From NCBI GenBank assembly GCA_964035545.1, contig OZ037773.1:151551-215550 (forward strand): a stretch of 64,000 bases of DNA. The letters are read 5' to 3'. The notes beneath the pieces were generated by a model that saw nothing but the letters and a program-made list of their open reading frames with translations, did not search any database and was not told where the DNA came from. Numbering within the stretch: the first letter of the stretch is position 1; each line of letters opens with the position of its first letter. Below, piece by piece: positions 24,046-60,160 of this stretch. A program made the position numbers and the translations under genes. Source of the DNA: Bugula neritina (taxonomy: Eukaryota > Animalia > Bryozoa).

Positions 24046-27000
24046 ATGAATTTTCCCTGGATAACCATTTTCAAAGTATTGCTAGCATCTAGCTACACAC
24101 TGGGTGAGTTAATATTTCTAAAGCTAACATCTCCAGTGTTTGTTAAGTCTGGTTCTTACTTTTTAAATGAATCGTTGTAATGACAGCTCTATTCCCTTCA
24201 GATATGATTCTTATGCTCACACAACTGTGACTAATGAAATACCTTGTTTCAACTTGTAATGTTTGAGGAATTCTAATGTGGCTGTTGGCTAGTTTAGCAG
24301 TTACTTTCTGTTGGTTTTCATGCGCCTACGGAGGCTCTCAATAAATGAAACAAATAAATTAAAGACGCAGTAAACAATCTACTTAGTTTAAAAGAGTTAT
24401 TTCTGTTTTTGTTGCCTTTTCATGCAGTACATGATGTCATAGGTCATGCAGTATATGATGCTATAGGTCATGCAGTATTCCTATTTCAAATATACTTTTA
24501 GCCTTGAGAACGGGTAAACTTGAAACCAATCCAAAGTATGTAATTAATCATCTTGGTTATCAATTCATTTGTTTTGTTTGTTTTTGAATAGAATGTTATG
24601 TAGCAGTCAGAATCACTGGCTTTCCATGGATCCATCTCACTGAGATCCATTTGAGATGTGCTCAGATCGATCTTGCATAGTTGCCTCCTCTTAAGTGAAT
24701 AAATTTTTTAAGGATAATTTTTTCACCCACCCAGGTGATTAAAGCTACTTTGATTAGAAAACAAGATTGTTGCCGTATAGAACTATAAACTACACGCAGC
24801 AAAGCTTTTAGAGTAAAGTAATTTTGCCAATTTATGATGATTAATTTTAATTTTTTAGCTTGACAGCTTATATAAAATTAATAGCTGTTGTGCAGACTAT
24901 TCATAAACCTGCAGGATTGTTAGGCTTGAAATTACCCAGCAAATAACTAATGGAAGTAAGATTTACTAGTCACTTAAATTCAATCTAAATGCTCCCATTA
25001 TTTGTTTCTTCCACCATCTATAATTTCATATAATTCAGTTTTCTTATTCATTGTACTAAAAGCCAAAGTTTTGGCATCTGAAAAAGTGCCTCTTGTAATT
25101 ATTAAGTACTTTGCTTAGCAACTAGCCAAGTTATCAATTTTATTAGACAACATTTTAGCGAACAGTCTTTTTCTACTTCTCAGATCGATCTGGCATCTTT
25201 CCATGGTTTTATTGTCTTGAGATTGATCTGAGTTCGATCTCTACAGACCCACCAGGTCAGATTGATGGAGATCGATCTTTGCCGTCTTTCTTAGTGAGAT
25301 CGATCTGAGATTGATCCATGGTTAATCACGGGCTTTCCATGTACCGATCTCAGATCCATCTCAGCGAGATCGATCTGAGCACATTACTCAGATCGATCGT
25401 TTTTCCATGAGAGTGTCAGATCGATCTCTCGGAGTTGCCTCCTCTTAAGTGAAGAGCACTTTAATAGTATAATTTTTTCACCCACCTGAGTGATAAAAGT
25501 TACTGCTTGTGAAAAACAAAATTTTCATAGTCTAAAATTTGACGTCAGCTATAAACTCTACGCAGTAAAGCTTTTAATATGAAGTAATTTGGCCAATTTA
25601 AGATAATTGATTTTAATATTTTAGCTTGACAGCTTATATAAAATTAATAGCTGTTGTGCAGCTTATTCATAAACTTACGGGACTAATAGGCTTAAAATTA
25701 CGCAGCAAATAACTAATGACAGTGCGTTATACTAGTCGTTTAAATTCAATTTAAATGCTCTCACTTTTTGTATCTTCTACTGTCTATAATTTTACATAAT
25801 CAAGTTTTCTTAATCATTTTACTGAAAGTCAAAGTTTTGCCACTTGAAATAGTTGCTATCTTAATTATTAAGTACTTTGCTTAGTAATTACCAATAAGTT
25901 ATCATTTTTATTAGCAGATGACATTTTAGCGAGCAGTCATTTTTCTACTTCTCGGATCGATCTTTCATCTTTCCATGGTCTTATTGCCTTGAGATCGATC
26001 TGAGTTCGAGCTCTACAGACCGACCAGCTCAAAACGACTGAGATCGATCTTTGACGTCTTTCCATGGATTGATCTCCCTGAGATCGATCTGAGATCGGTA
26101 CTTGGAAAGCCGGTGATTAAGTTGTGAGAGTTGGACAAGAATTGTGTTTTGTTTTGTTTGTTATCAAAGTGTTACATAACAGCCAGGATGAGTTAGCCAA
26201 AAGTCATTTTTTCATTTTTGCAATGTAGGTTCTGGTGAGCTAAACTGTTGAATCTATTTATGTTTAGCTCAACCATCTACAGAGATAGACTACAGTACTC
26301 CAAGCTCACCTGACTTCTATAAAGATGAGGAAATAACTTTCACATGTGAAGCAACTGGTTATACTGATCTGAGAAGCTTACGGTTACGATATATAGCTGA
26401 TGGAGACAGTACAATCTATCAAAGTGGATGTAGTCGAAGTGCTGATGATGACACAGTATGGGAGAGTGCACCATCTCCAGATATTATTACTGTCTCTGGA
26501 ATAGAAGGACCTGGAGTCAGTAATGCATACTGTAACTCAGATGGTAAACCTGAAGGGTTCACTCTTTCTGTGCAACTCACTGCAACTGACTCGACACTCA
26601 AAGGGAAGTTCTACTGCAGAGGGTTTGAAGGAGGAGGTGTTGGAGAATTTCTCTCCTCAGAAGTTTCAATGGATGTCAAAGGTGAACACTTCAAACTAGT
26701 TTCTTTGGTCACTGATAGCCTTTATATACCACTTTAGCACTTTCTAGTACAACTTCTCATAGTTTTTAACTAACTTCCTCTCTTTCTCCCTCATAGACAA
26801 ATTTAACTGTTCCCAAGATTGGTATTATTGGTATTGAAATAGTATGTTTGCTATGCATTATATGGATAGTGGATAGTATTTGTTTTATTTGGCCTTTGTC
26901 TTCCAGCATCTCATGGAAGGATCAAGTGATAAAATTTAACTTTTCCCATGATGGTGGTAGTTAGTTAAATCAAAATAGTATATTGGCTATCTTTGTTGGG

Positions 27001-28883
27001 TAGAGGGCAAATTTTAGTTTATTATACCTTTGTTGGAGATTTTCTGGTCAGGATCACATAAGGATATCTGGTTCACATGTAGTTTCAGATAACTGTTATC
27101 ATAAGCAGACTTGGAATGTTGTAATGTTGCCATTTAAATTTACACTTTTTATTGCTACAATTTACCCAGGATATAGCACATGGCCTTTACTGCAGTCCTA
27201 ACCTAATTTACAATACAGCAATGCATCTGTATTTGGAAATGTATATTATGCATTCTTTCATTCTACAGTTGCTCCAACTGGCATATCACTTAATAAACCA
27301 GAGACTATTATAGAAGGGGAAGAATTTACCTTTGATTGTAACTCTACAGGAGCAGATCCTGTGTCAGTCTATGAATACAGTAAGTATATACATGTCTAAA
27401 TGTTATGCAACAAGCTTTCCCCACCTTTCTATCTAAGAAACTAAAAACAAATTAAATACCATAGCAGTGATAAAAAATTTTAAAAGATCATCTAAAAGGT
27501 CTTTTGTTATATTAAACTGAAATTTATAAGAATTCAGGAGAAACATACTATTGTATTAATTGGGTATCGGTATTTTATTTTAGTTCCAATTCAATAACCA
27601 ATAATATTCATCTAGCTTTCGCATAATCTTAATTGAATGATTATTGGGGAAAATAAAAAATGCACATGGATCATTTCTGGGTGAAGCTATCATAAACTTG
27701 CGCTTGTAGATTTTAGTTATAGTCTTCACTATTTCTTTTGTAGTTTTTTCCCTAACTTTGAATGTCTAGTATACATGCACATGTTTTATTTATCAGAGGT
27801 AAATGGTAAGGCAGTGGCTGGAAAATATACTCCCACTGAGACAGAGAGAACTGAACTAACTTTATCCTGTACAGATACGAAACATTCTAACTGGAAGGGA
27901 GGGAATACTCAACAAACTGTTGCCATCACACCACAGTGTAAGTAAGCACCATGAATTTGTTAATATCGCTTGAGTGTGGAAATTGTAATTCCTATGTAAT
28001 GTTTGGAATTTTATTTTATTGCATTATATTGTTGTAGACTTGGCTAAAAAGCCTGGTGTTCAAGATCCAATTGTGAAAGAACTCAACCCTGGACAACCTG
28101 ATGCTAGACTAGATTGTAGCCAACATGTGGATGCTAACCCACCACCCTCTACGTTCACTTGGACATATAATGGAGTTGTTACCACAGAAACATCTAATGA
28201 GCTAACTCTGGATTCTCAAAAGAATGGTGTAACAGAAACAGCTTCATGTACAGCTAACAATGGCTTATGTAAGAATGAGTACTTATATAATTTATAATGA
28301 TTGTTTCAAATGTTTTCTAAGTTTTAAATTAACTTTTTCTACACAATTTAAAAACTGTTTCAGCGAAGACAGTGGCTATCAAATGGAACATAACATGGGA
28401 TAATGCGGCCACAATACTCACATCCACTACAACACCCACTCCAACTACTGTGAACAAGGGAGGTCTGATAGGTGGCATAGTTGCTGCTTTAGTCGGAGTG
28501 ATAGTGGCAGTAGTAGTCTCGGTGGTAGTGGTTAGAAAATCAAAAAGTATGTTTTTATTATCCATTGCTAGAATTCTAATTTAATAGTGTAATTGTAGTA
28601 GTCTTTGTTATTTCTTAATTGGGTGGGTGATAGAAAACTGAGTAATACTGGAGATAACCTTGCATTTAGTATAATTGCAGTAAATATAAACCAATATATG
28701 TATTCATTTTTAAAGTCTCCATCCCTGTGAGTCGTGAGAACTTCGTATAGAAAGTGGTTTCAACTAAGCTAAGGACTTGTTTTCTGTAGTAGCAAAAGGA
28801 AGTTATGACTCAATACTGTTTTAGCATCACCAATCATCTTTACTTTGAATAATTGCAGCAACAAAAAAATATATATATATATT

Positions 28884-28972
<89 letters not shown>

Positions 28973-31900
28973 ATCACACTAGCCAGTTGGTATCGCATAT
29001 TCTTCGGATGCTCCACCAGATAATCAATAATCCAACGTCAAAAAAAAACTAATGTAACACCTGAGCAACAATAAAAGGTTGACGAAAAAGATTAGAAAAA
29101 GAAAATATTCAATTGCAATTCCTTGCAAATAGCTTATGCAGTAGAGATTTAATTGGCTGATAACTGTTTAACTGGCCTACCTTTCAGTTTTACCTTAATC
29201 ATTCCAATAAACAGTACATTATTGAGAATAGTGAGTGGGATTTAAAAATTTAATAATTTATACCACAGCAGTAAAGCCATTGGTCACTTAAGTTTTACTT
29301 GTTTTGCTTGTGGCTTTAAGCTAAAACGGAAATGAAGTCATTAAAGTTCCATCTGATTTTCTAATTGCCACTGCTCTGCTCCACACATGGTTGAAGTCAT
29401 TCCAATCTGTTTTGTACAGATTAGTTTCAGTTTGTCAAGCTTTCATTTTCTCTTTTGTTCAATTTTAGTAAGGAGGGCAGTAGCAGATGAAGGTAAAACA
29501 TAGTTAGACACCAGCTAGCTCACACCAATAATCACAGTTTGCATATGTGACCATTTTCCTCGTGTACTTCTAATTATAAACATCAGTTTGAAAGTTCTAG
29601 ATTAATGCTTTAGTATAGGTGTTCCTTGTACAGCCTTTGGTAATGTTGTCTGCTAATACAAGTTCTTACAACAGACTTACCAAATTGCATTTGTATTCTG
29701 CACAGCTGCGTTTTATGGGTTTGAGTTGGTAAAGTATAGTGAAAAATTGAGATAACTAGTTCAACTAATGTTTGATTCAGGCCACGTTTGCCCACCATTT
29801 CACAGCTGGTTACATGTATTGAAACCATAACATATTAAACTGGGCTGTTTTCTCAATTATCAGTCTCGGTTGCTTTTCTTCTGCCCAGTGTTGGCCAATT
29901 GGAGTATTGATATACACTGAATTTCTCCATAAGTGTTCCTCCACTCCTAACAGCAATTTAAAGTTTAAGCACTTACAGTTCTATGTACAATGTTTATAAA
30001 TTAATGCTATTAAACCAGTTGGTTTTACAATTAGATTATTAAATGGATTCACGATGATATTTTGGTAGATAACATTTTATTTTTTAACCCTCTTGAGTGT
30101 TGTTTTCACTGGTACAACTAGTTCAGTTGTAATGCAACCATGTGGCATTAAGCTTTAAACTTTTAAACCAGCCCAGTGTGTGTTGCATTAGCTAAGAACA
30201 TGATGCAGTAAAAGTCAGCAATAATACTGTGTGGACTGCAGAGTAGAAATCTTACAGTAATTCAGGGCATGTGCAAAACATTTGTTATAAAACAATTTTT
30301 AAGCATACAACCCTGTCTAGTGATCTGTAGATAGTAGCTAATATGTATATGAATGTTTCAAAATGTGTACGTAATTTTATATCAAATATTTCAAGCTGTG
30401 GACCTCTCAAATAAGTATTTCTAACTTTCTTTATTTTGCCATCTGCAGAAAGAAGACTCCGGTCGGACGCTGAGAATGCTGCAGACTCCAAGGAAAAGAG
30501 GTGAGAGTTTAAATGTTTTTCACAGATTTACTGTTTGTTTCACAGATTTAGCAAATGAGTAAAATTTGTTGAAATATTTTTGGCACATTTTCAAAAAAAA
30601 TTAACTGGTCAAACTCTAAAGCTTGTTTAGTGTCACCCTAAGGCCTAAGCTATTAACAAAATCTCACTCCTCACTGCTTTGACTTCCATTTTCACTTTTT
30701 AACTTCAGTGTACATTCCTTACTATATCTGCATGTACACAGGCCGATTTTGTGCTAGTCGATTTCGCTATTGCTGATTGCAAAATCGGCCAAGAAATTCA
30801 GACGATTTTTATGTCCCTCGTTATTTGTCTGCTTGCGCTTTATTGGCGATTGGCTCTCAGTCTATATAACTTTCTCAGGTTTACGAGCAAAGGTCAAGAT
30901 CAGTTGTATTTGCCTTGGCGTAGTAATCAATCAAAATATGGCGACTTCAACATTTCTGTTTATTCTGATGAACTAATAAATAAAAACTGAATAAAATAAA
31001 CAGCTTGCTGCATTTGAAAATTGCGTAAAAATTCATCTCTAATTTTGTATTAAATTAAATAGCAAATAGCTGGCTTGGTAGCTATTTATTTAACCAGGTT
31101 TAATGTCTATAATTATCCATAAATTACTAAGCTACACTACATTAACATCACTTACCAGATTTTTTAAGCTATTTAGTTTAAAACTAGAAGTTTAACTGAA
31201 ACGTTATTGCTTATAATATAGTCAAGGAAAACTCTAGATCTCAGCAAATCTGTTCTCTTAAAAAAAATTAAGTTGTAAAGTTGAGATGTTAATACTAGTT
31301 ACATGAATATAAAACAACAACATATAAACTACAAGTTATAAATTATATTATAAGCGAGTAAAAGTTAAGAATAATACCAGTGTTCTATTTAAAAAAGCAA
31401 TATTTAAGGAATTTCCATGAAAGTGAACCGGACTTTTACTCACGTATAGTCAGACAGCTTATCGGCTGATTTTAATGAAAAATCGGCCTGTGTACACGCA
31501 GCTTAACTGTGATATATCTCCATCTTCTCTTACTAACTGTGATGTATCCCCATCTTATGTACTATTATTATATTTTGCACTTTTCCCTGTCAATAGACTA
31601 TCTACTGGGATTATCTTTACAGCAATTCTAGTTAACTATACAGACTAACTACTATGCTGTTTTTTCTACCATAAAGTTTGGTTTTCAGTCAGCTTGCCGG
31701 CCAGTAATGCTACCAAATCCGAGACTATTCGAAAAAGTTATTTACAAAATGGGACACATGTCATTCGACTTAATGTAGTGCACATAGCAGGAAATTAGGA
31801 CCAAAAGTTGAAGTTAGCTCAAAACTCATGAATATTTCCTATATAAGTAACTTTATGTATAGCATAAAAGGCTGGGAGGAGATTCTTCAACATCATCAGT

Positions 31901-34900
31901 ACCAGTAGTGCCGTATCAGTTAGGCTATCACTGAAATGGTGTTGGCTACTGAATCATTCTAATTTAAACTTACTCACATTCACAACTATTTTAGACCTGA
32001 CTGATTTTTGAATGACTCACTCCAAACTAGGCCATGTTGAATATGGGCACCTTTAAATCTTCCCTGGACTAAAATTATCTATTTGTCAAATGTTTATTTT
32101 CGAGTTTTCCATTGGCTATTTGTCTATTTCCACGAGTGTCCATCTTTAAGTGACTTTTTCTAAAGTGTATATCATGGCTAACTCACGTGTTAGGAGTTCA
32201 AACTAACCCATTCCCCAACTCACAGCTTCGAGTTAATAATTTCATGTCTTAAGACAATACTGCTCTTAGACAGCATTGTCCTAAGACAGTTCCAACTGCC
32301 TGAAAACCAGACTTGAATGATTACAGTGACTACATTTATGTTTGTGTGTTCCTCCACTGCATGCATGTTGCCAACACCAAACGCTTCTTCTCTCTGTAAC
32401 CTCTAAGCATGCTACCTGTGTTCTGACTAGCAGATGTTGTTTGTGTTGTGTTATTGTTTCTTTCTGTTAACTCTGGCATGTGTTGTTTATGAGTAGCAAC
32501 CTGGCCCCTAAACCTGTGTACACCTCTGGTGGTGCTAAGAAAGACAAACGAATCAACGGCAACAGACATTGTAAGTTCTAATCTAAATATACGAGTTTTT
32601 GGCTGAGGTTATGTCTGTTTGTCACATTAAGTTGAGGTGTGTTACAAGTCACTTGAAGCTAATACTTGTAGCATGTATGTAAATCAAGTCAAATGTATTT
32701 CACTGCCTTCAGTAGCAAGCAGAGAGAGTTTAGGTGGACACCAGATCCTCTCTATTATGTTACACTTTGTTGCATAGCAACATAACCTGATCACGTGCCA
32801 TCTCCTGTCACTTCAACATATCAGGAAGTTAATCTTCATAACTTGTCAGGTCGTGTCACCTAAGAACAGTACTCTGAATGCTTCACTTTCACCTCAAGTG
32901 AATTATTTGCTGGAATACATTTGGTAATTGATGAGGAAGTGTCATTGTTCTTGAGCTATGGTGAAGGTGCACCTATCATAGCATCCACTAACTAGCTACT
33001 GTTCATGACACTTAGTTGGGGCACTTTTATATTGCCTACTCCATTGTATGTTGGTCCCAACTGTATTAGTTGCTCACAAATCAGTTGCTGTCAGGCTCAT
33101 TCAACTAGCGCTAGCCCAAACATTCAACTGCTTTATTTTTTGCTAGGACAAGCTTGTATAGTTTGAGCAATAGCTATGGTTATTCCTACATCTTATCTGT
33201 GTGGTTGTAGTTATTTACTAACAAATATACTCCCAGCTATCTTTAAAGTGAAGTAGTACTGTGAGCTAGTTGATTGTACTGTGTGCTAGTAGTACTGTGT
33301 GTTAGTTAGTAGTACTGTGTGTTAGTTAGTAGTACTGTGTGCTAGTTAGTAGTACTGTGTGCTAGTTAGTAGTACTGTGTGCTAGTAGTACTGTGTGCTG
33401 GTTAGTAGTACTGCGTGCTAGTTAGTAGTACTGTGTGCTGGTTAGTAGTACTGTGTGCTAGCTAGTAGTACTGTGTGCTAGTTAGTAGTACTGTGTGCTA
33501 GTTAGTAGTACTGTGTGCTAGTTAGTAGTACTGTGTGCTAGTTAGTAGTACTGTGTGCTAGTAGTACTGTGTGCTAGTAGTACTGTGTGCTAGTTAGTAG
33601 TACTGTGTGCTAGTTAGTAGTACTGTGTGCTAGTTAGTAGTACTGCGTGCTAGTTAGTAGTACTGTGTGCTAGTTAGTTGTACTGTGTGCTAGTTAGTAG
33701 TACTGTGTGCTAGTTAGTAGTACTGTGTGCTAGTAGTACTGTGTGCTAGTAGTACTGTGTGCTAGTTAGTAGTACTGTGTGCTAGTTAGTAGTACTGTGT
33801 GCTAGTTAGTAGTACTGTATGTTAGTTAGTAGTACTGTGTGCTAGTTAGTAGTACTGTGTGCTAGTTAGTAGTACTGTGTGCTAGTTAGTAGTACTGTGT
33901 GCTAGTTAGTAGTACTGTGTGCTAGTAGTACTGTGTGCTAGTTAGTAGTACTGTGTGCTAGTTAGTAGTACTGTGTGCTAGTAGTACTGTGTGCTAGTAG
34001 TACTGTGTGCTAGTTAGTAGTACTGTGTGCTAGTTAGTAGTACTGTGTGTTAGTTAGTAGTACTGTGTGTTAGTTAGTAGTACTGTGTGCTAGTTAGTAG
34101 TACTGTGTGCTAGTTAGTAGTACTGTGTGCTAGTTAGTAGTACTGTGTGCTAGTTAGTAGTACTGTGTGCTAGTTAGTAGTACTGTGTGCTAGTAGTACT
34201 GTGTGCTAGTAGTACTGTGTGCTAGTTAGTAGTACTGTGTGCTAGTTAGTAGTACTGTGTGTTAGTTAGTAGTACTGTGTGTTAGTTAGTAGTACTGTGT
34301 GCTAGTTAGTAGTACTGTGTGCTAGTTAGTTGTACTGTGTGCTAGTTAGTAGTACTGTGTGCTAGTAGTACTGTGTGCTAGTAGTACTGTGTGCTAGTAG
34401 TACTGCGTGCTGGTTAGTAGTACTGTGTGCTAGTTAGTAGTACTGTGTGTTAGTTAGTAGTACTGTGTGCTAGGTAGTAGTACTGTGTGCTAGTTAGTAG
34501 TACTGCGTGCTAGTTAGTAGTACTGTGTGCTAGTTAGTTGTACTGTGTGCTAGTTAGTAGTACTGTGTGCTAGTTAGTAGTACTGTGTGCTAGTAGTACT
34601 GTGTGCTAGTAGTACTGTGTGCTAGTTAGTAGTACTGTGTGCTAGTTAGTAGTACTGTGTGCTAGTTAGTAGTACTGTATGTTAGTTAGTAGTACTGTGT
34701 GCTAGTTAGTAGTACTGTGTGCTAGTTAGTAGTACTGTGTGCTAGTTAGTAGTACTGTGTGCTAGTTAGTAGTACTGTGTGCTAGTAGTACTGTGTGCTA
34801 GTTAGTAGTACTGTGTGCTAGTTAGTAGTACTGTGTGCTAGTAGTACTGTGTGCTAGTAGTACTGTGTGCTAGTTAGTAGTACTGTGTGCTAGTTAGTAG

Positions 34901-37900
34901 TACTGTGTGTTAGTTAGTAGTACTGTGTGTTAGTTAGTAGTACTGTGTGCTAGTTAGTAGTACTGTGTGCTAGTTAGTAGTACTGTGTGCTAGTTAGTAG
35001 TACTGTGTGCTAGTTAGTAGTACTGTGTGCTAGTTAGTAGTACTGTGTGCTAGTAGTACTGTGTGCTAGTAGTACTGTGTGCTAGTTAGTAGTACTGTGT
35101 GCTAGTTAGTAGTACTGTGTGTTAGTTAGTAGTACTGTGTGTTAGTTAGTAGTACTGTGTGCTAGTTAGTAGTACTGTGTGCTAGTTAGTTGTACTGTGT
35201 GCTAGTTAGTAGTACTGTGTGCTAGTAGTACTGTGTGCTAGTAGTACTGTGTGCTAGTAGTACTGCGTGCTGGTTAGTAGTACTGTGTGCTAGTTAGTAG
35301 TACTGTGTGTTAGTTAGTAGTACTGTGTGCTAGGTAGTAGTACTGTGTGCTAGTTAGTAGTACTGTGTGTTAGTTAGTAGTACTGTGTGCTAGTTGATTG
35401 TGAGACTAGCTGTTCAGCTATGCCAGGGTCTAACTTGGTTAAAATGATAGAAGGAAACTCTTATATGGGAAAGATAAGCTAAGTTTCATTAAACGTTTAT
35501 ATTGACATGTGTTGCTCTCAACATCAGTATCGTAAACTCCCCTTTCCCCACTCGAAATAGTGAGGTATAAGTTTAATATGGTAAGTGATAGAGCATATGT
35601 GTGTGCAGATTTATTCTATTTTAAACACCACATCTCATAGTTAGATAATTCAGTTGGTGCTGTAGAGCTTTCAAATGCTATCTGGAGCAATTTAATTTTA
35701 TTCATCCCCCCCCCTCCCCTTTAGTGTTTTAGCTCACCTCTGATAATCAGCCATTATGATGGGTTTGCTGTACATAGTTACTCAAAGCTCAGCATTTCCG
35801 ACTATAATCAGCTATAATATGCATTGCATAGCTGGTTTAGTGAGGGAATATGCTATGCCTGTGCCGTACTAACTTGGCAACCTACACAGTCCATAACTAG
35901 GCTCGTGATTGATGGCCTTTACAACATACTCCGGTGTAGCCTCACTATGATAGCAGATAGTATTCTACCAACTATCGCACTAGGTGTTGCCCATCTCCGA
36001 ATACAGCTTGAAGAGAAATTCATTGGCCCAATGTAGTTGATTTCGGAAGATATTGTCTGCTGGCTCTTTCTGTTACACCAGGCCACATTGCTTAACCCCC
36101 TAGGGCCTAGACACACTGCTTGGCACATGACATCCTAAACTCATAGGGACAGCCTACTCTGTAGGCTATGCTGTGTAGAGCAAGTTGAAGGATGCTAAGT
36201 CATGTTTTATTGATCAAATAGGGAGGAATGTTTCAACAGGAGTAGTTTATTTATTCAGTGTGTTTTAGTAACAAGTAGGTCACGTGACTCCATAGTTTAG
36301 CATGTAATCAGGGACTAACGTGCTACACTTACATGTACATGTAGCCTGTTTTACACAATAATATAACAACCTTCTACAAAATATCATAGATTCCCACTTC
36401 CTCTCCTTAACTTCTTGCTCTCCTGGTTTTCAGTCTATACAGCTATCTGCAGTTATTTATAGCTATATCTGCAGTTATTTATAGCTATATCTGCACAGCT
36501 ATTTATAGCTATATCTGCAGTTATTTATAGCTATATCTCCAGTTATTTATAGCTATATCTGCAGTTATTTATAGCTATATCTCCAGTTATTTATAGCTAT
36601 ATCTCCAGTTATTTATAGCTATATCTCCAGTTATTTATAGCTATATCTACAGTTATTTATAGCTATATCTCCAGTTATTTATAGCTATATCTACAGTTAT
36701 TTATAGCTATATCCGCACAGCTATTTATAGCTATATCTACAGTTATTTATAGCTATATCTACAGTTATTTATAGCTATATCTGCACAAATGTTTATAGCT
36801 ATATCTGCATAAATGTTTATAGCTATATCTGTACAAATGTTTATAGCTATATCTACAGTTATTTATAGCTATATCTGCAGCTAATTATAGAAAGTGGGCG
36901 CAGTAATGGAGGAAGGCTGTGTTTTAGATTGAAATTAATGAACTTGGGTTATTAAAATTTTCCTCACTCCTGCACCAAATAATTTATTAGCTCTTAGTCA
37001 TGAGATAGAACATTACATGAAGAGACAAATCTTATTTACTACCCTCTAGAGTCTAGTGCCTTGTATCACACACTCAACTCATCCCCTATTTATTAGATGT
37101 ATTATGTACAACACTTCAACACTCAGTTTGTTCTTTCAATAGATCTTTCGGCATGTTTTGAGGTTGCAAGTTAAGCTTTGATATACCAGAAAGTTATAGA
37201 GTTATTCTAAATATTTTCCCTGGTGACTTGAATGAATTCATCTTTACTGAGTCAGACTTTTTAGTAGTCACAGATGTTGCGTCAGTTGTGAGTCAAACTA
37301 CCACCAGTTGTATATCAATAAGCAGGAAGAAATTATAGAAATGTGAATATGTCACCAGATATATTCCATGCTGGTACTATCTAGTTAGTGCTCTAATTAG
37401 AGAATTCAATTTATGTACCACTACACTACTACTACTATGTACCACTACACTATTACTACTATGTACCACTACACTATTACTACTAACTACTATGTACCAC
37501 TACACTATTACTACTATGTACCACTACAGTCTTACTACTATGTACCACTACACTATTACTACTATGTACCACTACACTATTACTACTATGTACCACTACA
37601 CTACTACTACTATGTACCACTACACTATTACTACTATGTACCACTACACTAGTACTACTATGTACCACTACACTAGTACTACTATGTACCACTACACTAC
37701 TACTATGTACCACTACACTAGTACTACTATGTACCACTACACTACTACTATGTACCACTACACTACTACTACTGTCTCAGTATTGTGTAGACAACTGTCT
37801 TCCTGACAGTCACCATTCCCATGTAAGACTTTCTTGCATTCTCCAGCCACCATCTTCATCCAAATGTGGAAAGTACAATCCATCTCTCCTATTGCACTGT

Positions 37901-49100: not shown

Positions 49101-50012
49101 ATAAGCAATGAGATCTTCATTTCTAGTTGTGATATGAGTTTATTCTTTTCACTGATCTCTTCGCCATACTTAAGAACTGTTGCAGCGAGATTAGCCCGAC
49201 GTGATGTTGGCTCCATTGTAAGTGTTGCTGGTACCTCTTCACTCCTGGCGCTGTTTACTGGCGTCATCATAACGACTGTGTTGGCACCAGATGTGACATC
49301 ACCAGATGAGTCATCTCGGTTATCAGTGACTGAACTAGCAGCAGCATCAGGATTGTCAGTAAAGTTTATCTGTTTGTGTGCAGAGACTGTCTGGGTTTCG
49401 GCAGTTGATTCACTGATGGAATTAGTTATGGATTTCTCTAAAACAAGCAACTATGAAGTCAAATAAAATAAAAAAGCTGATTTAAAATCTGCTGATACAA
49501 TTTTATAAATAAAACGCAACACAAAATTATAGATATACACAACACATATTTATTTAGTGTCTCAACTGTTTTCTAGACATACAGTTGGATCCTTTTTGGT
49601 TAGCTGGGACCTCATACGATCAGGTTACTTAGGTGTGTACTGACTACAGCTTATAGACGGAAACAGCGTAGTTAGTTGAGTGACTAGTTGACAGTTGAAT
49701 GAGCATAGAGAAACACTAACAGTGAGTGACACTGACAGTGAGTGACACTGACAGTGAGTGACACTGACAGTGAGTGACACTGACAGTGAGTGACACTGAC
49801 AGTGAGTGACACTGACAGTGAGTGACACTGACAGTGAGTGACACTGACAGTGAGTGACACTGACAGTGAGTGACACTGACAGTGAGTGATACTGACAGTG
49901 AGTGACACTGACACAGGATAAAATTTGAAGACTGACCAGCATGCTCAGAGACCTTGACCTTAGCGTTAGGAGAGCCCTCTTGCTCTATCTTCTGCTTCAG
50001 TTTCCTAAACAT
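40158..50012 (-). CDS. GOLGA1: Golgin subfamily A member 1 (golgin-97), GRIP-domain trans-Golgi coiled-coil protein
   Basis: N-terminus MFRKLKQKIEQE (ATG at 50012); coiled-coil exons at approximately 49025-49450, 48346-48590, 47838-48249, 47208-47362, 46784-46938, 46044-46141, 45583-45740, 45260-45363, 44370-44500, 44118-44240, 42922-43227, 42501-42606; last exon 40158-40382 with GRIP INFEYLKNVV...LLEFTPAEEKLLKDTLEYKMSWW. Internal boundaries approximate. Confidence 0.85.
43857..44069. repeat. 19-bp minisatellite CATAGTCACACTACTATTA
   Basis: Direct inspection. Confidence 0.93.
44776..44875. repeat. 16-bp minisatellite CAGTACAGAGTACACA
   Basis: Direct inspection. Confidence 0.9.
44960..45258. 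repeat. (CTA/CCA)n trinucleotide tract in a GOLGA1 intron
   Basis: Direct inspection; source of the poly-V, poly-L/P and G/S ORFs. Confidence 0.93.
46160..46465. repeat. 20-bp minisatellite GGGTACATAGTGAAGGGTAG
   Basis: Direct inspection. Confidence 0.93.
48640..49033. repeat. 24-bp minisatellite containing the exon donor site
   Basis: Unit CTTACTCTTCA(T/C)ATACTATACA(T/C)A; the minus strand reads GAAGA|GTAAGT. Confidence 0.93.
49720..49912. repeat. 16-bp minisatellite ACAGTGAGTGACACTG
   Basis: Direct inspection. Confidence 0.93.
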
Positions 50013-53000
50013 CACTGAGCTGTTCTTCTAGAAAAGTAATGAATGACATTTCACCTAAAAATATTCATGCAATGAGTGCATTAACAGAACTGAGCACACA
50101 GCTAACTGATGGCAGTAAATTAGTTTATTAATTAATCAAATATAAGTTAAACAATGAAAATAATTAACCTAGCCCAGTTCAGAGCAGCATGTGTGAAATA
50201 ATGAGTGAATTATAACTTACACTAACTTATCTTAAATAAATATAGACTTGATTATACTCACATCACCTCACCACTAGCATCCTACATGTTTTTATAATCT
50301 TTAATTGAAGAAAATGCAGAGAACCAAACAAAAAACGGAAGGATTACATATTTTGAGGCACTGAAATAAGTTTTGTAAATTATTCACAATTAATTGTGTA
50401 TCAAGAGAGGCAACATCTCTAGGTGCCTATCAGTATATAGAGATTTGCGTAACACTGGAAAATTTTCATGCCATAGGCTGATTAGGACACAAGAGTCTGC
50501 TTCTCATTGCACGATAAACCTAGAAAAAGTTCCTGGGAAATTAATGAGTTATGAGATGGTAGGTAGGAAAGCTTAAAAAGCTTTGGCCCCCTCTAGAGAC
50601 AACCAGCTAAGCTTGAACAACTGTTCAAATTAAACAAGCTTTCAGTTTTTTATATAACATATGAAGCGCAAAAAAATTTTTATCTTCAAGTTTATCTATA
50701 ACTCACTTAAAATTATTTATCAAACTGCATAGAAAGACCTAAGGCTCATGACTAAAAAGACAGTGTTTCGCATTATAGAATGTAGCATGTATTGCCTACT
50801 TAATAGCAATATGAATATTAAGCATTGAAAAATCACGTTCACTCTACTCATATATAGCAAGAATTTGTCTAAAATCCTCACAGTATGAAGCAATATAATT
50901 AGAAGGCTAATACTAATAGCAATACTGATAGTAATAGTAATTTATCAATTAAAAAATAGCCATAATTAAAGTTTGTATTTTATCAACTACTACTAGTACT
51001 ACTAGTAGTAGTACTACTAGCAACATAACTTATCGATAAGCATTTCAATAATCGATAAGCATTTCAACTGACAAAAAGCAAAAGCATGTTTTTAAAATCA
51101 GTATGACTATGAGAATGACTATGATAGTAAAATTATTATGATGGTCATGGCATTGAATTAATTATAATTATTATTGAATCACTCAACCAGAAATGAGTAA
51201 TGAACATCAACATGTAATATTTTAAAAATTAAATTTAACGATTATCATTATGATTATAACTATAACTATAAGTTTAAGTATAACTATAAGATTTAATTTG
51301 CCAAAATCTAAATAATAAACAAGAATCAAAATTGTCAATTTTACATGATGATGATGATGATCAATTTTTCGTACTCATAATAATATATATAATTATTGAG
51401 CGATTTTAATTAAATGATTATTATTCATACTAAAATTCATATTTAATCATTTTTATAGTTATACTTGTTATATCGAGACATGGAGTTTAAAGTTGAAGTA
51501 ACTGTAACACTAACTGTAAGTCAAAGTGTGTCTATTCAGCTTATCGATATAGCTGTCTGCTGGTAGGACAATCACAATGACAGTCTTAAGACCAATACAG
51601 ATACTGATAGTAATATGCAGACAGCCAATACCGTATGCCAGCCAATGTTAGCCACTAAATATAAATAGTAAATTACCATTATAACATACTTATAGTAATA
51701 CTATAACTATAACTATTAGTATTAGTATTACTATTACTGTATTAGTATTAGTATTACATTAGTATAAGTATTAGTATTACTATTACTAATTTTTATTATC
51801 AATTAATGAATTATGGTTTATTATAATTATTTTAGTTAACGTCGATTTGTTACCAATTTTTATTTTATTGTATATGTGTAATTTCATACTCAAACTTAAA
51901 CTTCTAAATTAACTTGAAGACTTTTATTCTAAAACTTCAAATACTAGTAGAATTAAAACTAAAAGTAAAACTAAATGCAAAACAGAAACTCGAACTGTAA
52001 AACTAAAGGAAAAGGCAACGATGTTGTATCACGATTTTTACCTTAGTTGTAGTTGTCTCCTTTTAAATATTTTGTTTATGGAGGGTGCACAACTCCGTTT
52101 GGGTATCATAGTCAAAATAATTATTACATCAATAAAATATGTATGGATGGAACAGATATAAAACAGATGTGTTTATGAGAGATTGAGGAGACTGAGTGGT
52201 TGAAGATTATGATTAAGAATTATGGACAGAGCAGAAAAGAAGTGTTTAAATACAATGATGCTCATTACGATTATTTATAAACATTGTATTTCCAATGTTT
52301 TACTCTAATTATATTTTTTCAAGCGTGCTTTCCAAAATAACTAAGCTGTGCCATGTATATATTGGCAATTGTTGCTAATTTTGTCTATTAAAAAAACTTT
52401 TTTGTTTTTGGTGTGCTTTCTTCCTTCTTATGGGCACTTTCAATGTATATTATACTTTCAGTTACCGAGTTTTGTCTTATGGTTTTTTTTATTTTCACTG
52501 TTTATGCTAAGTTTGTTTTATTAGACTTAGAGACTGATTGAAGAATTTGTGATAGTTCATTGCTCTAGATATCAAAGGTCAACTTCAGATAGATCTATAC
52601 AAGCCAAAACTGACTATTATGAATAACACAAGTAACACTGTGTAAACATTTATACATCAAGACAAGGCATATTCAGCATATCATCAACACTGTTTAAAAA
52701 AGTTGACAAAAGTTTACATATTATAGGGTGGTTATATTCTTTAAAAGAAGCATTGTGTGATTGGTGATCAATAGGTTAATAACTATATATGCCAGCTAAT
52801 TTGATTGCATTATTTGCTCAGTTACAGCCTGCATAGTTTTTCTTTGTAAAATATTTTAAATGTGAATGGAACAGGAAAGCGTGCAGCAGCCATCACATGA
52901 CCAGTAAATGCTTGTGCACATGCCGCATGTGTTTCATATAAATATTTTACTATTAGAATATAATCCAGCAATCCAAACAGGACAAATGGGAGATAGGTGA

Positions 53001-53416
53001 GTATAGGTCCGGAAATCATAATGATGTTAAAAATCTATGACAACTGATTGTGATGCTTAATTTTATATCGCGTTTGTATTTTTTTAATAAGTCACGTAAA
53101 ATTGCAAAATCAATTAATAATTCTAATGAAATAAATTATATTAGAATTCAAAATAATGGCAGTTAGTATACGTGTAAAGGATAAAAAAAGTAATATCACA
53201 GCTCAGATGTTAGTTTAAAGGCCATTCCTCAGCAGTATTTGCACAGTAAATATATTATATTATATCAGAATAATATATATCTCGAGCTAGCATAGTATTA
53301 ATAGTATAAAATATCATATAAGGCTGCAAATCAGATCATATTATTATGTAGCAAACGATGCTATGCAAACCATAAAATAATGATAAAGTCAAGCTGGTGG
53401 ATAAACAAAAAATTTC

Positions 53417-56400
53417 TCATCCAACTAGCCAATAAAATTGAAACATGAAAATGAGGCTGACAGATGATAACACTTTTGACATCGTGTTACATCTATCTCC
53501 TTTGCATGAACACTTCAGAGTCCTGCTCCGAATATTTGGTTCTCTGTAAATATCTGCATCTTTGTTGAGACACTCAGAGTTGTCATAGATGGAGCCACAT
53601 GACCTTGTTACTGCAATAGTGATCAGTTAGAATAAATAAACGATTGTAGCCAGTGTACGTGTGCATTGTATGTGTGTCTGTGTGTACATGTATGAGTGTT
53701 CTCTTATGCTCTAAATTACTTACCACCGGTGGTCTTCACCCCGGAGATACGAGAAATCACTTTGAGTTTTGTGCAGCCACCATTTTCCAGAGTGTTAAAT
53801 TTTTTGTCGCAAGAAACTTCGTGTTTTACATTTCCTTCGTAGGCATCGCCGCAGTCACTGTCATAACCTGTACACTCATAGCACACCGTGGCCTTAGCTC
53901 CTGCAGTGATGTATAAAATATATGTTTACAATTGTCCTTCTTGCCTTTAAAGAGTTAATTGTTACTGACTAGCTTTTAGCTCTGAACTTCATCACTACAG
54001 TTATAGGAACCTAACACCCCATAATTATTAGTTGAGCATTTATGAAACTTGCCCCCAGTCGCTATATAGTAGTATAGTATTAATTTTATTCACTAGCTCT
54101 GCAGAGAAGGCACAACTACAAACTGAGCATATTAACTACAACAATATACAAAGGTGTGGCCTGTGTGATAGTTATGAATAGCTTGATAGGAGAGTATACA
54201 GGTGATAGAGAGAGTGTATTTATCTACAGAAAGATAGTATAGAGTGAGTATATAGAGAGAGTATATAGAGAGAGTATATAGAGAGAGTATATATAGAGAG
54301 AGTATATAGAGAGAGTGTGTATAGATATAGTATAGAGAGTATATATATAGAGAGTATATAGAGAGTATATAGAGTGAGTATATAGATGGTATATAGAGTG
54401 AGTATATATAGAGAGAGTATGTAGAGAGAGTATAGAGAGAGTATATAGAGTGAGTATATAGAGAGAGTATATATAGAGAGAGAGTATATAGAGAGAGTGT
54501 GTATAGATATAGTATTGAGAGTATATATATAGAGAGTATATAGAGAGTATATAGAGTGAGTATATAGATGGTATATAGAGTGAGTATATATAGAGAGAGT
54601 ATGTAGAGAGAGTATAGAGAGAGTATATAGAGTGAGTATATAGAGAGAGTATATAGAGAGAGTATATAGAGAGAGTATATAGAGAGAGAGTATATAGAGA
54701 GAGTATATATAGAGAGTATATAGACGGTATATAGAGAGAGTATATAGACGGTATATAGTGAGTATATAGAGAGAGTATATAGAGAGAGTATATAGAGAGA
54801 GTATATAGAGAGAGAGTATATAGAGAGAGTATATATAGAGAGTATATAGATGGTATATAGAGAGAGTATATATAGAGAGAGTATATAGAGAGAGTATATA
54901 TAAAGAGTATATAGAGAGAGAGTATATAGACGGTATATAGAGTGAGTATATAGAGAGAGTATATAGAGAGAGTATATAGAGAGAGTATATAGAGAGAGAG
55001 AGTATATATAGAGAGTATATAGAGTGAGTATATAGACGGTATATAGAGTGAGTATATAGAGAGAGTATATAGAGAGAGTATATAGAGAGAGTATATAGAG
55101 AGAGAGTATATAGAGAGAGTATATATATAGAGAGTATATATAGAGAGTATATAGAGAGAGTATATATAGAGAGAGTATATAGAGAGAGTATAGGGAGAGA
55201 GAGTATATAGAGAGAGTATATAGAGAGAGAGTATAGAGAGAGAGTATATATAGAGAGTATATAGAGAGTATATAGAGAGAGAGTATATAGAGTGTATATA
55301 GAGAGAGTATATAGAGTGTATAGAGAGAGTATATAGAGTGAGTATATAGACGGTATATAGAGGGTATATAGGGAGAGTGTGTATATCTACAAAGAGATAG
55401 TTTAGAGTGAGTATAGAGGGTATATAAAGAGAATGTGCAACAAAAGAGAGATTTTTAATAGATAATTTAGGAATGCTGCTACATCTAGAGACTAGAAATG
55501 GCCTATTCTACTATTAGGCTGTTATACCTTGTGCATAGCTGATACACTCACACTGTACGTGTCAGAAGATTTTGTTTTTTATAGTTATAACATGAATAAC
55601 ATAGTTCTCTCTCACATATGTTCTTAGTAGTGAGTATAGCAATAGACAGGTTAACATAGCAGCTTGTATGTAATGCTGTCAAACATTAATTAGTTAGCTC
55701 CTAGGTAATCAGTAGCAAACTAATTGAAGACAATACATATAGCTTGACAGTCAATACCAGCTACTCTAGCTACAATGATGACAGGGACAATAACAGCTAC
55801 AAATAATGAAAGACTATCTGCTATTAATATTACATATTGCTCTATGCAGGACTAATTATGCAACATGATACACATTAGCATAGCTCTTCACTGCTGTCCC
55901 GAATTCTGATATTGGATAACAAGTGCATACACATAGACATGCATAACATGAAACCCCCAGCTTGGTAGTCCCATATCAAAGGCTCACTCTGCTTGCTATC
56001 TCTCGTTTTGGATATAATGTATATCCACTGATGAGATGATTAGAAGATTGATTAGACTTAGAATTGAAAGAGAGAGACAGCAAGTGAACAGTGAGATAAA
56101 GATTCTCAGACTAGACAGCCACCAGAATACCTGGTTACTTAAACCAGAATAAGCTAACATTCCATCAATGCTATTTGTTTGCAGTTAGAATCATCAAGTT
56201 AAAGTAGCCGAGCGAGAAGTTAATTATTTTGGGCTTAACAACATTGTTTGAAGTAGTTATAAGGATGTTTTAAAGTGCTTAGCCTAGGAACCTAGACATA
56301 TACCCTGACCTGGAGGTTCAACCTTCCTTACAGATTCAGTTAGGGACTCGAGCTAATCTCATATAGCCTAGCAATATGTCTCAATGCACCAACCCCAAGC

Positions 56401-56731
56401 TTGACTTGTTTAGTAATTGATTTGACTTGGTTAGTAATTGATTTGACTTGGTTAGTAATTGATTTGACTTGTTTAGTAATTGATTTGACTTGTTTAGTAA
56501 TTGATTTGACTTGGTTAGTAATTGAGAAGATTTGATTTGCTGTGGCTTCAACCTCTCTCTACTGAGAAAGAATAGTTGTAGTATTGCTACATTATGCAGT
56601 GTGGTATTAGTATTGTTATATCATTATATATTATGTATTATTGTTATATTATTAACATTATACATCTACTTACCAGAAAACAGTGTTAATACAGTAACAA
56701 GCGTAAAAACACTGATAGAGATAATATGCAT
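53417..56731 (-). CDS. GPI-anchored Ly6/uPAR three-finger protein (quiver/sleepless-like), ~142 aa
   Basis: Exons 56674-56731 (signal MHIISISVFTLVTVLTLFS), 53724-53900 (TVCYECTGYDSDC...SC...GCTKLK), 53417-53610 (VTRSC...EC...CSCKGDRCN plus hydrophobic tail); phase-1 introns; 10 Cys. Confidence 0.88.
54230..55430. repeat. AG/TA-rich degenerate minisatellite (TATAGAGAGAGTA)n
   Basis: Direct inspection. Confidence 0.93.
56400..56525. repeat. 21-bp minisatellite TTGATTTGACTTG(G/T)TTAGTAA
   Basis: Direct inspection. Confidence 0.9.
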
Positions 56732-57562
56732 GTTCCAACAGGATTTAGTGTACCAGCACACCAGTTTATTACAAACTTATATTGACTGCGCCTACATCCG
56801 TACCAATTAGTACTTAGTAGTCCGGGGTACTACTATCAACACTATTTCTTTTGAATATACTATGTATTATGCTCAACAATGCTGCATGAATGCAGGCTTT
56901 TGTATTATTGAGATGCAACAGTAGAATAAAAATCAATGTGGTTTATGTTGTCCATAGCAACAGCCTATAGAAGTGCTAACGCTAGAAAATGTTATTATCC
57001 AAAGCAGTCCAATCGAGAGGGCTGTAAGACCCGATGATGTTTTTTACAAAATGATATATTAACTCTCCATTTTACCCTAGATGAGTTTAAAAACATTGTA
57101 GATCAGTAAAAGTTAATAAACAAAACTGCATCAAGAGTGCAATATGTTCAAGTATACTTTTTACTAGCAGTAAACATCACAGTATATAATTAAGTTTAGT
57201 GTATAGATGCTTCAAACTTTGTCTGAAATAAAATACATACCAGCATATCTTGTAAGTTTGATTTCACGAAAGAGTTATTACAACAAATTCAGAAAATACA
57301 ATTGGTAGGTAGGCTATAATGTTGATAACAAACTGGCAACATGAGCAGTTACAGATAATTAGTTAAATGACACAACACCAAGCATCAATTTCAACAGTTG
57401 AACTTAGAATTACAAACTCAAGCTACGGGCAAAGTTCTTCTCTGCATCAAATTAATTAGAAACTCACTGTAAACAGTGAGATAATCTTGGAGTGATTTAG
57501 TGTATTATCTGCATACATGCTATCATGATTAGCTAGCTGTTGTCTGCACTTTAAACATCTCT

Positions 57563-59434
57563 TTAGCGCACTACATAAAGTAGAATCATTGTCACTGCTA
57601 ACAAATATGCAGGTGTCACAGTAAGGTGTATGCAGCTGTTTTCTTTCCTTGTTAGCTCCCATGTCAAAGTGATCTCTTTCCCTGCAATATTTGTATATGA
57701 ATAATATGAGGTACATTGAGGTACACATTCAACTATACTGGTAACTAGTTATAGTAATAGAGTCTTGACTATAATCAGTATATACTAGTATTGTCTACCA
57801 ACCCCTTCAGCTGTCTAGTCTATAATGTTTGACATACAACCTACACTTTGGTGCCAATATTCAAAGTATACAGTAGTCCATAGCACAATATAGGAAAGGT
57901 AATCAACTTAACTAACCAAGACCATTGCTAGCACGACAGATCACTTTTTCATTAGTTGTGTTGGCTTGGAGGTTGACTATGTATGAACCAGAAGACTCTG
58001 CTAGTTCTAATAGCTGCCATTCCCAAGTAAAGTTGGTTGGTGAGGGGTTTGCTGTTAGATGCTCCCAAGTAAAGTTGGTTGGTGAGGGGTTAGCTGTTAG
58101 ATGCTTGATGCAGTTTAAAGTTATCTCCAAGTCGTTGGAATTAAACTCAACAACAATAGGGTTGTCTGTTCCAGTTTTAATATCAATATCTGCGTGAACA
58201 GACTGCTCAAAATTATATGGGAAGACTTAAAGCATCTGTCTAATGATGTAGCTGAGCGGACAAATATCTACCTGATTTTAGTGATTAGTCAGTAAACATA
58301 AAGAAAACAGAGCAATAGAAAGAGCTAAATTTAATTGCTTACATTTTGGTTTGACATTGGTTTGAGTATAAACATTTCCTCCTTTCCAATTGACATGCAC
58401 CATATCTCTGCAAGAGAGCGTTACTCCCGCTCTGTCCTTTTTAGTAGGCGAGTATTGTTTCGTTTCATTCCAAATATCTCCATTAAGTTCTGAAGAGAAA
58501 AAGAAATCTCGCCATGATTGAAGAAGAAAAATTAGGTATGTACATACTTATACTTATATATACATATAATATTTATTTGTACACATATAGGTATTTATAC
58601 CCATATATACCTATACAGATATACATATATACCTATACAGATATACATATATACATACACATATACATATATATATATGCAACACTTACCATACACATAT
58701 ACAGATTTTGGGATAGCATTTGAGGAATTACAACTGAACCCAAACCATTTATCTTCTTCCACATTACCATGTATGGTGAGAGATAGATTCTGTGGGGCAA
58801 CTAAAAATATTATAATTGAATGAGTGTATACGTTCACTTTATCACAAAGTCCATAGGTACTGTGAATAATTGACGCAATATCTATTTTCACAGTAGAAGA
58901 GTTTGAATTTTTACTTTACTGTAGCTGCAAGCCTTATTATAAAAACTGTAAGTTATTTATTTAAAATGATGTTTAATAAATTAATAAATTAAAGCAAATT
59001 AAGATATTAACATACTAATAATACGTGATACAGATGTGCTTATTCACACAATTGGTCGGAAATGCTAACTTAATTATTTTGTTATAATATGCATTACACC
59101 AATTAGAAGTACTGCGTATTTGAGTACCTATATTTAACAAAGGTTCTAAATCAACTCAATTCAATTATTGTTTATAAAACTGCCGTGTGCGCTGTGTATG
59201 TAGGCATGTGTGTATGTAGGTTTGTGTGTATGTAGGTATGTGTGTATGTAGGCATGTGTGTATGTAGGTTTGTGTGTATGTAGGTATGTGTGTATGTAGG
59301 CATGTGTGTATGTAGGTATGTGTGTATGTAGGTGTGTGTGTATGTAGGTATGTGTGTATGTAGGTATGTGTGTATGTAGGTATGTGTGTGTGTGTGTGCG
59401 TGGGTTTGTGTGTGTGCGTGAGTTTGTGTGCGTG

Positions 59435-59466
<32 letters not shown>

Positions 59467-60160
59467 AGTAGGCAGAACAAGTTATAGAATGGTATTTTTA
59501 TTTTAAGTAACGACACCTTTAATAGCAACTCTATGACGTAATGAGTCGACAGCTTGAGTATTCTCCCCTACTCTCTCAAGTCCTGAACAATAAAACTCTC
59601 CAAAGAAAGACTCCGACACTATTGTGAGATTCTGGACCAAGTTGAATCCAGTAGTTGACCCTACCGATCTGCACTCTTCATCAGAGATTGGAGATGCCTG
59701 TACGGCACTGGTGTCATTGTTGAAGGACTTTGATAACCAATTGTTCTGAAGGTTTATAAAACAGCCTCTTTTGTAAGTCCTCTTCAGATAGTCAAATTTA
59801 AAATAAAGAAGTCTTAAGTTGGTGAATCTCGAGGGAGCACATGTCCATTTCATGACATCGTAGGTGTAAAAGTCTGGTGAACTTGGATTTGCTAAGCGAA
59901 CTTGTAAAGCTGGCTGAGCAAATGCATGTTCTATAACAGACATGCACAAATATTTTTATAAATAACCATATAGTAAAATATGCTTAGAAAAATAATTTGC
60001 TACATTATAAATATATGTGTTGAAATGTTATTGTTTTAGTCAGCATATTCTAAGTGCATACAGGATACTCTTAGTATGGCTCAATATTTTTACCTGAAAA
60101 GTATGCAAACTTTAGTACAGTTATCAGGAAAAACAAAGCATTGAAGTCTCCAGCTTTCAT
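57563..60160 (-). CDS. 3-Ig-domain protein, paralog of the 24046-38868 receptor, with a C-terminal GPI-type signal and no cytoplasmic tail (~376 aa)
   Basis: Exons 60094-60160 (signal peptide), 59517-59930, 58690-58800, 58343-58489, 57917-58189, 57563-57681 ([39 protein letters not shown]); all phase 1, with the same intron positions as the paralog; total 1131 nt. Confidence 0.82.
59195..59466. repeat. TGTATGTAGG(T/C)ATGTG minisatellite grading into (TG)n
   Basis: Direct inspection. Confidence 0.92.

Follow-up and report, generated by a model that had tools for sequence, protein, structure and literature searches.

Gene organization of the locus

The window analysed here is a stretch of 64,000 nucleotides (nt) of the genome of Bugula neritina (GenBank assembly GCA_964035545.1, contig OZ037773.1, positions 151,551 to 215,550 of the forward strand). 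It contains two convergent genes, designated gene A (plus strand) and gene B (minus strand), which a preliminary description had presented as a possible paired receptor system of the immunoglobulin superfamily (IgSF), consisting of an inhibitory receptor and a tailless paralogue with a glycosylphosphatidylinositol (GPI) anchor. Positions given below are those of the window unless a contig is named. All introns in both gene models are GT-AG introns in phase 1, and the translations are free of stop codons.

Gene A begins with exon 1 (24046-24103), which supplies the start codon and signal peptide and ends in the phase-1 donor GTGAGT. Exon 2 (26268-26681; 414 nt, 138 codons) encodes a V-set-like first domain (D1) with four cysteines, C26, C54, C88 and C116. 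The second domain (D2) is divided between exon 3 (27269-27379; 111 nt; VAP...FTFDCNSTG...VYEY), which is 53% identical to the matching stretch of the Watersipora protein P0048, and exon 4 (27797-27937; 141 nt). Exon 5 (28038-28268; 231 nt) encodes a third, immunoglobulin (Ig) domain (D3) ending in CTANNGL, and exon 6 (28364-28546; 183 nt) encodes a Thr/Pro stalk, a transmembrane (TM) helix of 23 residues (Kyte-Doolittle mean of 3.3 over 19 residues) and the residues RKSK, before the phase-1 donor GTATGT. The probable last exon lies at 38657-38868 on the same strand (alternative start 38650), was assigned from its motifs, frame and alignment to a Watersipora tail, and reads IIYADL, VLYTSI, PPPPLY, YGNV and stop. 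Intron 1 contains a repeat (24600-26200) with very high contig depth in both read runs and several internal joints, which is probably a mobile element family. Three satellites occupy parts of the last intron (33252-35395, 36444-36890 and 37412-37773) and include a 20-mer in 112 copies, a 22-mer and a 24-mer.

Gene B has the same order of exons on the minus strand: exon 1 with start codon and signal peptide (60160-60094), exon 2 encoding D1 with four cysteines as in gene A (59930-59517; 414 nt), exons 3 and 4 encoding the two halves of D2 (58800-58690, 111 nt; 58489-58343, 147 nt, with HVNWKGGN), exon 5 encoding D3 (58189-57917; 273 nt) and a last exon (57681-57563) containing KENSC, IHLTVTPA, 13 residues, R and stop. 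The D3 exon has an in-frame tandem duplication of 42 nt (58021-58105), the two copies of which differ at two synonymous sites; the doubled stretch of 14 residues holds a Trp that probably corresponds to the core Trp of strand C.

The gene models agree with the preliminary description in the features common to both genes, namely D1 exons of 414 nt, following exons of 111 nt and phase-1 introns. The anchor motifs listed there were all recovered in a six-frame scan, each once per gene and where they had been placed: PSSPDFY at 26300 in gene A and 59886 in gene B, FYCxGxE at 26609 and 59595, HxNWKGGN at 27883 and 58397, ANPxPxxFTW at 28133 and 58094 (with a second copy in gene B, at 58052), and CxAxNGL at 28247 and 57938.

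The two genes are not adjacent, as a minus-strand coiled-coil gene lies between them (approximately 42.9-50 kb), for which Pfam gave sub-threshold coiled-coil matches alone. Just upstream of gene B is a DnaJ-family gene (61679-64000, minus strand; L057:657-3434), whose orthologous contig matches Pfam DnaJ, DnaJ_CXXCXGXG and DnaJ_C and whose synteny is kept in a sibling sample. Window positions 48169-64000 are repeated immediately downstream at 100.000% identity with a period of 16,032 bp (L056, L032). This repeat is a probable assembly artefact or very young duplication. It takes in gene B together with the 5' portion of the coiled-coil gene and a portion of the DnaJ gene, and the "twin" of gene B 16 kb away belongs to it.

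Read evidence for splicing of gene A

The preliminary description had proposed RNA-Seq confirmation of both gene models. Gene A was examined, in read run X1, which is labelled metagenomic RNA-Seq and whose status as RNA is a guess; the evidence covers exons 2 to 6. In the gene A region the X1 contigs are confined to exons 2-6 plus the intron-1 repeat, are 95-99% identical to the window, and are lacking over 28600-29999, downstream of exon 6. Exon-only coverage alone could reflect a diverged species passing the 95% filter, and only three spliced junctions were taken as evidence: a GT..AG joint 26681>27269, a spliced joint 28268>28364, and a loose end at the 28038 acceptor that carries the last part of an exon-4-like sequence. 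The contigs show the modelled splicing in gene A or in a very close copy of it, and they hint that the exon-6 donor is in use.

Domain folds

No Pfam family matched D1 of gene A or gene B at E ≤ 1. An AlphaFold model of D1, built from an alignment of 22 D1 sequences, had a predicted local distance difference test score (pLDDT) of 95 and a predicted template modelling score of 0.90. Foldseek searches with this model returned nanobodies, antigen-binding antibody fragments and CD8 (E of 6e-5). The top 50 matches of a second structural aligner were all V domains (Z 10.2-11.4, root-mean-square deviation (rmsd) 2.6-3.3 Å, 109-119 residues, 9-16% identity), nanobody V domains being matched at an rmsd of about 2.7 Å over about 115 amino acids (aa). 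D1 is accordingly modelled as V-set-like, a Greek-key beta sandwich superposable on V domains, with a short helix at residues 85-91. The four cysteines are invariant across the 22 sequences and G112-x-F-Y-C116 is conserved; C26 and C116, the latter within G-x-F-Y-C, appear to correspond to the canonical Ig B-F cysteine pair. The position of the strand-C core Trp is occupied by a nearly invariant Leu (L39). D1 has neither the core Trp nor the recognition by Pfam V-set, I-set or ig profiles expected of a V-set domain. The earlier characterization of both gene products as atypical IgSF surface proteins holds.

D3 of gene A matched Pfam Ig_3 with 23.5 bits (E of 7.9e-5), below the 30-bit cut-off, and D3 of gene B had no Pfam Ig match; D3 of the Watersipora homologues scored 30.7-31.4 bits, above the cut-off. 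A model of full-length Watersipora P0048 had a mean pLDDT of 56, with 70-90 in D1 and D2, and its best matches were V plus C2 receptors: CD22, MAG, CD33, ICAM-5 and VCAM-1.

The candidate cytoplasmic tail of gene A

Receptors with immunoreceptor tyrosine-based inhibitory motifs (ITIMs) carry the tail motif [ILVS]xYxx[ILV], often in two copies about 25-30 residues apart. The exon at 38657-38868, 10 kb beyond the TM exon of gene A, contains two sequences that fit this pattern, IIYADL and VLYTSI, with their Tyr residues 27 apart, and poly(A) signals follow 170-250 nt beyond its stop codon. A coding signal was found in the ITIM frame alone (0.16 per codon, versus -0.25 and -0.14 in the other frames), with a guanine plus cytosine (GC) content of 54%. 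The encoded sequence aligns to the tail of Watersipora P0061 with 37% identity over 54 aa (pairwise E of 1e-5). Both ITIMs have counterparts there, IVYAVL and LPYMSI, set in DDSIVYAVL...DALPYMSID...LK compared with DDPIIYADL...DAVLYTSID...LK in gene A. When the P0061 tail was used as a query against the whole genome, this exon was the sole candidate. A rough estimate of the chance that the best candidate would fall within 10 kb 3' of a same-strand family TM exon, based on about 14-60 such exons times 10 kb against 432 Mb (both strands), is about 1 in a thousand. No second copy of the exon was found in a whole-genome search, a protein-database search with the exon gave no match, and a protein search with the Watersipora tail returned only itself. 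Because of its coding frame, the P0061 alignment, its standing as sole genome candidate and the low odds of chance, the exon is considered quite likely to be the tail of gene A, joined to exon 6 by deduction from sequence. The preliminary description had one gene continuing into a TM helix and a Tyr-motif tail; the helix is there, and the Tyr-motif exon lies 10 kb further on, with no read linking the two.

Two acceptor AGs lie 7 nt apart at the start of this exon (38648-38657). The acceptor at 38657 is in phase with the TM exon and gives the dual-ITIM tail. The acceptor at 38650 is the first AG and has the better polypyrimidine tract; joined to the phase-1 TM exon it gives RKSKT-stop, a tailless product. 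The acceptor pair could be a splice switch between tailless and ITIM isoforms. No intermediate tail exon was found by homology to Watersipora tails or by codon scoring, for which the best windows were satellite repeats, and no other plus-strand gene was found near the ITIM exon.

The end of gene B and its conservation

The last exon of gene B is homologous to exon 6 of gene A and, as had been described, stops after 39 codons, following N-S-C and a hydrophobic stretch. The GPI-signal pattern proposed for this end is present on inspection: an N-terminal signal peptide, N-S-C, the 8-residue spacer IHLTVTPA, a hydrophobic end and R-stop. The end of gene B is most likely a GPI signal, or else a TM anchor with a one-residue tail.

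The region of gene B is collinear with an orthologous contig, L057, over window positions 64000-58678, the same DnaJ gene included. Exon 1 is 68% identical to the orthologue, and D1 is 92.7% identical, with nonsynonymous (dN) and synonymous (dS) rates of 0.032 and 0.238 and a dN/dS of 0.13; the dN/dS of exon 3 is 0.24. Gene B is kept 1:1 with the sibling taxon under purifying selection. Non-coding DNA of the window is 80-87% identical to contigs of the Joint Genome Institute (JGI) and Logan, and the animal sequenced here is therefore a close relative or sibling species of the one in the JGI/Logan sample, not the same one.

Family size, distribution and evolution

Searching the 216-Mb assembly with D1 of gene A gave at least 86 matches; about 70 lie on contig C9 and the others on C1, C2 and C4. 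On C9 they form clusters at 0.03-0.23, 0.35-0.37, 0.71-1.09, 3.07-3.25 and 4.14-4.21 Mb. Some family genes have a repeated D1-D2 module or runs of D1 exons. One such locus, L030 (C9:3157405-3160788), contains six or more D1-type exons in tandem about 490 bp apart, with stop codons in adjoining copies, and is either a gene with many V-like domains or a decaying exon array.

A D1 profile search of 1.84 billion representative proteins gave 50 matches. Ten of these were traced to their source, and all were from a Bugula-labelled JGI metagenome, Logan contigs, B. neritina or Watersipora; none was cnidarian, and most were single-exon open reading frames from the JGI metagenome or Logan contigs. Named matches were Bugula neritina KAF6030178 and Watersipora subatra XP_067939839 and XP_067939872, and a further protein search added 10 Watersipora proteins titled 'uncharacterized' or 'NCAM-like'. 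A narrow-alignment search of metagenome contigs for related loci found no relative. Literature searches returned nothing on bryozoan IgSF or ITIM receptors, the closest description being that of the Hydractinia Alr family. The genes thus belong to a large undescribed IgSF receptor family, known so far from cheilostome bryozoans alone (this genome, Bugula neritina and Watersipora subatra), and the suggestion of an undescribed invertebrate receptor system stands at the level of the family.

In a quick IQ-TREE analysis of D1, gene A falls inside a shallow clade of 46 rows (support 95) and is one of at least 36 close copies, the A-type clade numbering about 36-46. Its nearest relatives are tandem copies at C9:146839, 69758 and 103954. 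Outside the A-type clade, among unresolved old lineages, gene B groups with its orthologue P0008 on a branch of length 1.87. Unlike the A-type clade, several of these old lineages have 1:1 counterparts in the sibling sample. D1 dN/dS among A-type paralogues is 0.3-0.88. The comparisons indicate that the A-type clade is young and fast-changing and the gene B lineage old and slowly evolving.

Tails vary among the Watersipora proteins, which include the dual-ITIM tail of P0061, other Tyr-rich tails and a 20-residue tail in P0057. The tail of P0039 (Watersipora subatra XP_067939872) reads YEAL-x9-YDSL, a spacing like that of an immunoreceptor tyrosine-based activation motif (ITAM), so that activating tails may exist in the family alongside inhibitory ones.

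Tandem neighbours of gene A

Gene A is the last of five tandem A-type genes with D1 exons at C9:34044, 69758, 103954, 146839 and 177820, and its D1 is 77-85% identical to those of the other four. The exons at C9:69758 and C9:103954 (L003 and L004) are identical and lie at a distance of 34,196 bp, suggestive of another perfect segmental duplication within the array. Fourteen A-type TM exons were found in the genome, and in six of the 14 a TAA lies inside the match (C9:37173, 72894, 107090, 149967, 1032544 and 1084514); four of these six are TM exons of the tandem genes that directly precede gene A. When the TM query was cut at residue 54, all 14 exons matched without a stop. The TAA is therefore placed 1-5 codons after the hydrophobic core and before the donor position of gene A, from match coordinates and stop counts. 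The genome-wide count of family members and tail types that had been proposed is thus available as D1 matches and A-type TM exons, with the tails deduced from coordinates. If the stops hold, gene A and its neighbours would be genes with similar ectodomains and different tails, the ITIM tail occurring in gene A alone.

Interpretation of the locus

Taken together, the evidence makes it probable that genes A and B are intact members of a bryozoan IgSF family, gene A a probable ITIM receptor and gene B of GPI type, which are neighbours in a cluster and not a pair. The architecture proposed for the family consists of phase-1 exons encoding a signal peptide, a V-set-like D1 with a putative second disulfide pair and short helix, a small Ig-like D2 in two exons, an Ig D3, a stalk exon starting K-x-V-x-V-x-W-N-I-T-W, and a membrane anchor. 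The TM exon of gene A would most likely be spliced to the exon at 38.65 kb to give the dual-ITIM tail; Tyr-phosphorylated ITIMs would then be expected to recruit a tandem-SH2 phosphatase and damp signalling, which would make gene A an inhibitory receptor. The C-terminal hydrophobic peptide of gene B would most likely be exchanged for a GPI anchor at N-S-C, leaving gene B as a tailless surface molecule for recognition or adhesion. Several observations weigh against parts of this reading. The X1 contigs may derive from an orthologue or near paralogue and not from gene A itself. For gene B, the GPI assignment is by pattern inspection, the last 19-21 residues (Kyte-Doolittle 1.9-2.1) are hydrophobic enough for a TM anchor, and no canonical poly(A) signal was found within 660 nt of the stop. 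For the tail of gene A, no X1 read joins exon 6 to the ITIM exon, the genome-wide E of the P0061 tail against that exon is a weak 0.53, and the stronger acceptor, 38650, does not keep the frame of exon 6 and would give a tailless product, which leaves room for alternative splicing or for an intermediate exon that escaped detection. In a further, unlikely reading gene A is itself tailless, exon 6 being read through to a stop or joined to 38650, and the ITIM exon is a relic or belongs to another transcript. The preference for 38650 as first AG with the better polypyrimidine tract, the need for a 10-kb intron full of satellites, and the absence of the ITIM exon from every paralogue agree with it, but X1 coverage ends at the exon 6 donor, the exon codes in the ITIM frame alone with its 54% GC, both ITIMs, their spacing and the following motif are kept in the tail of a Watersipora member, and no further plus-strand gene was found nearby.

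In classical paired receptors the ectodomains are nearly identical and the partners differ in the signalling tail. Genes A and B do have equal domain architecture and opposite anchor types within 30 kb, and the patterns at their ends, a probable ITIM tail exon on one side and a GPI-like or short TM end on the other, fit the tail contrast as far as sequence can tell. Their ectodomains are not closely similar: identity is 33-37% in D1, as expected from the earlier estimate that about 70% of D1 positions differ, 41-44% in D2 and about 40% in D3. The family relationship itself is well beyond chance (E of 1e-12 to 1e-17 for gene B D1 against A-type D1s in the genome-wide search), but gene B is no nearer to gene A than to about 40 other genes. 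It is also under purifying selection while the A-type clade turns over fast, an unrelated gene lies in between, and gene A is accompanied at the locus by its four A-type copies. A dedicated A/B pair, with an ITIM receptor and a GPI paralogue that share a ligand as receptor and decoy or bind each other, is thus highly improbable, and the claim of a paired system is not supported because the ectodomains are not near-identical and the long-branch gene B falls outside the A clade. By these comparisons A and B are distant relatives at the edge of the same array, not a matched pair. The inhibitory/tailless contrast that had been drawn is present at the family level and is better shown by gene A and its tandem neighbours. 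The true paired system may, as a tentative proposal, be gene A with those four neighbours as tailless, decoy or GPI forms, for which the five tandem and closely similar D1s speak, as do TM exons stop-free through residue 53-54 with a TAA in the next 1-5 codons, an ITIM exon unique in the genome, and a D1 dN/dS of 0.75-0.82 among the copies. Against it, the stop position comes from match coordinates alone, an earlier donor site could bypass the stop, unrelated tail exons might serve the neighbours, and two of the four copies are identical and perhaps an assembly duplicate. The reading of A and B as cluster neighbours within one family is retained here.

Comparison with known receptor systems

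Fusion with adjacent colonies, or their rejection, occurs in colonial bryozoans, which also carry heritable symbionts; to our knowledge no recognition genes are known for Bryozoa. The clustered, lineage-specific V-set-like family described here would be a concrete candidate set for such genes. The locus holds the genome's only copy of the conserved dual-ITIM tail, beside apparently tailless near-copies, and gene B, as an old and slowly evolving member of GPI type, is useful as an outgroup to the fast-evolving clade and for contrast with it. A more speculative extension, which is considered improbable as it stands, is that, in a bryozoan V-set receptor family with at least 60 genes, gene A alone is inhibitory with a dual-ITIM tail and forms with its tailless neighbours, of near-identical but fast-changing ectodomains, a protostome paired-receptor or histocompatibility-type complex deciding colony fusion, rejection or symbiont tolerance, independent of the vertebrate leukocyte receptor complex (LRC) and the Hydractinia allorecognition complex.

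The Hydractinia Alr genes are a large clustered family in the allorecognition complex of a colonial invertebrate. Pfam does not recognize their N-terminal V-set-like domain, which structure prediction recovers, often with an extra helix; more Ig-like domains, a stalk and a TM helix come after it, some members have ITIM or ITAM tails, and the family includes pseudogene-like copies and tails that vary (Huene et al. 2022, PMC9546547). The bryozoan family resembles it in each of clustering, a Pfam-missed V-set-like D1, extra Ig domains, stalk, TM segment, some ITIM or ITAM-like tails, pseudogene-like copies and variable tails, and the preliminary description was right to name Alr as an analogue, by architecture. 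No sequence relationship was detected, however, and the D1 profile matches traced were of bryozoan type alone. The bryozoan D1 keeps the canonical cysteine pair and has a second one, whereas Alr D1 lacks the canonical cysteines. The two families also belong to different phyla, and the bryozoan one is not known to have a genetic link to fusion or rejection.

The vertebrate paired receptors (KIR, LILR, SIRP, CEACAM1 versus GPI-linked CEACAM5/6, and Siglec-5/14) are likewise encoded by clustered genes and have IgSF ectodomains with ITIM or tailless/GPI ends. Their ectodomains are very similar, in contrast to the 33-44% identity of A and B, and no charged TM residue or adaptor is evident in the bryozoan genes; the vertebrate design would be approached by gene A and its tandem neighbours alone. 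The Siglecs CD22, CD33 and MAG are the best structural matches to the whole Watersipora ectodomain, and they too have an extra disulfide in a V-set D1, along with C2-type domains and tandem ITIM tails. Identity is only 10-12% and the global template modelling score low (0.17-0.3), and nothing points to homology beyond the Ig fold. With its conserved dual-ITIM tail, the ITAM-like tails of Watersipora and numerous apparently tailless forms, the bryozoan family would independently repeat the receptor design known from the vertebrate LRC and the Hydractinia Alr complex.

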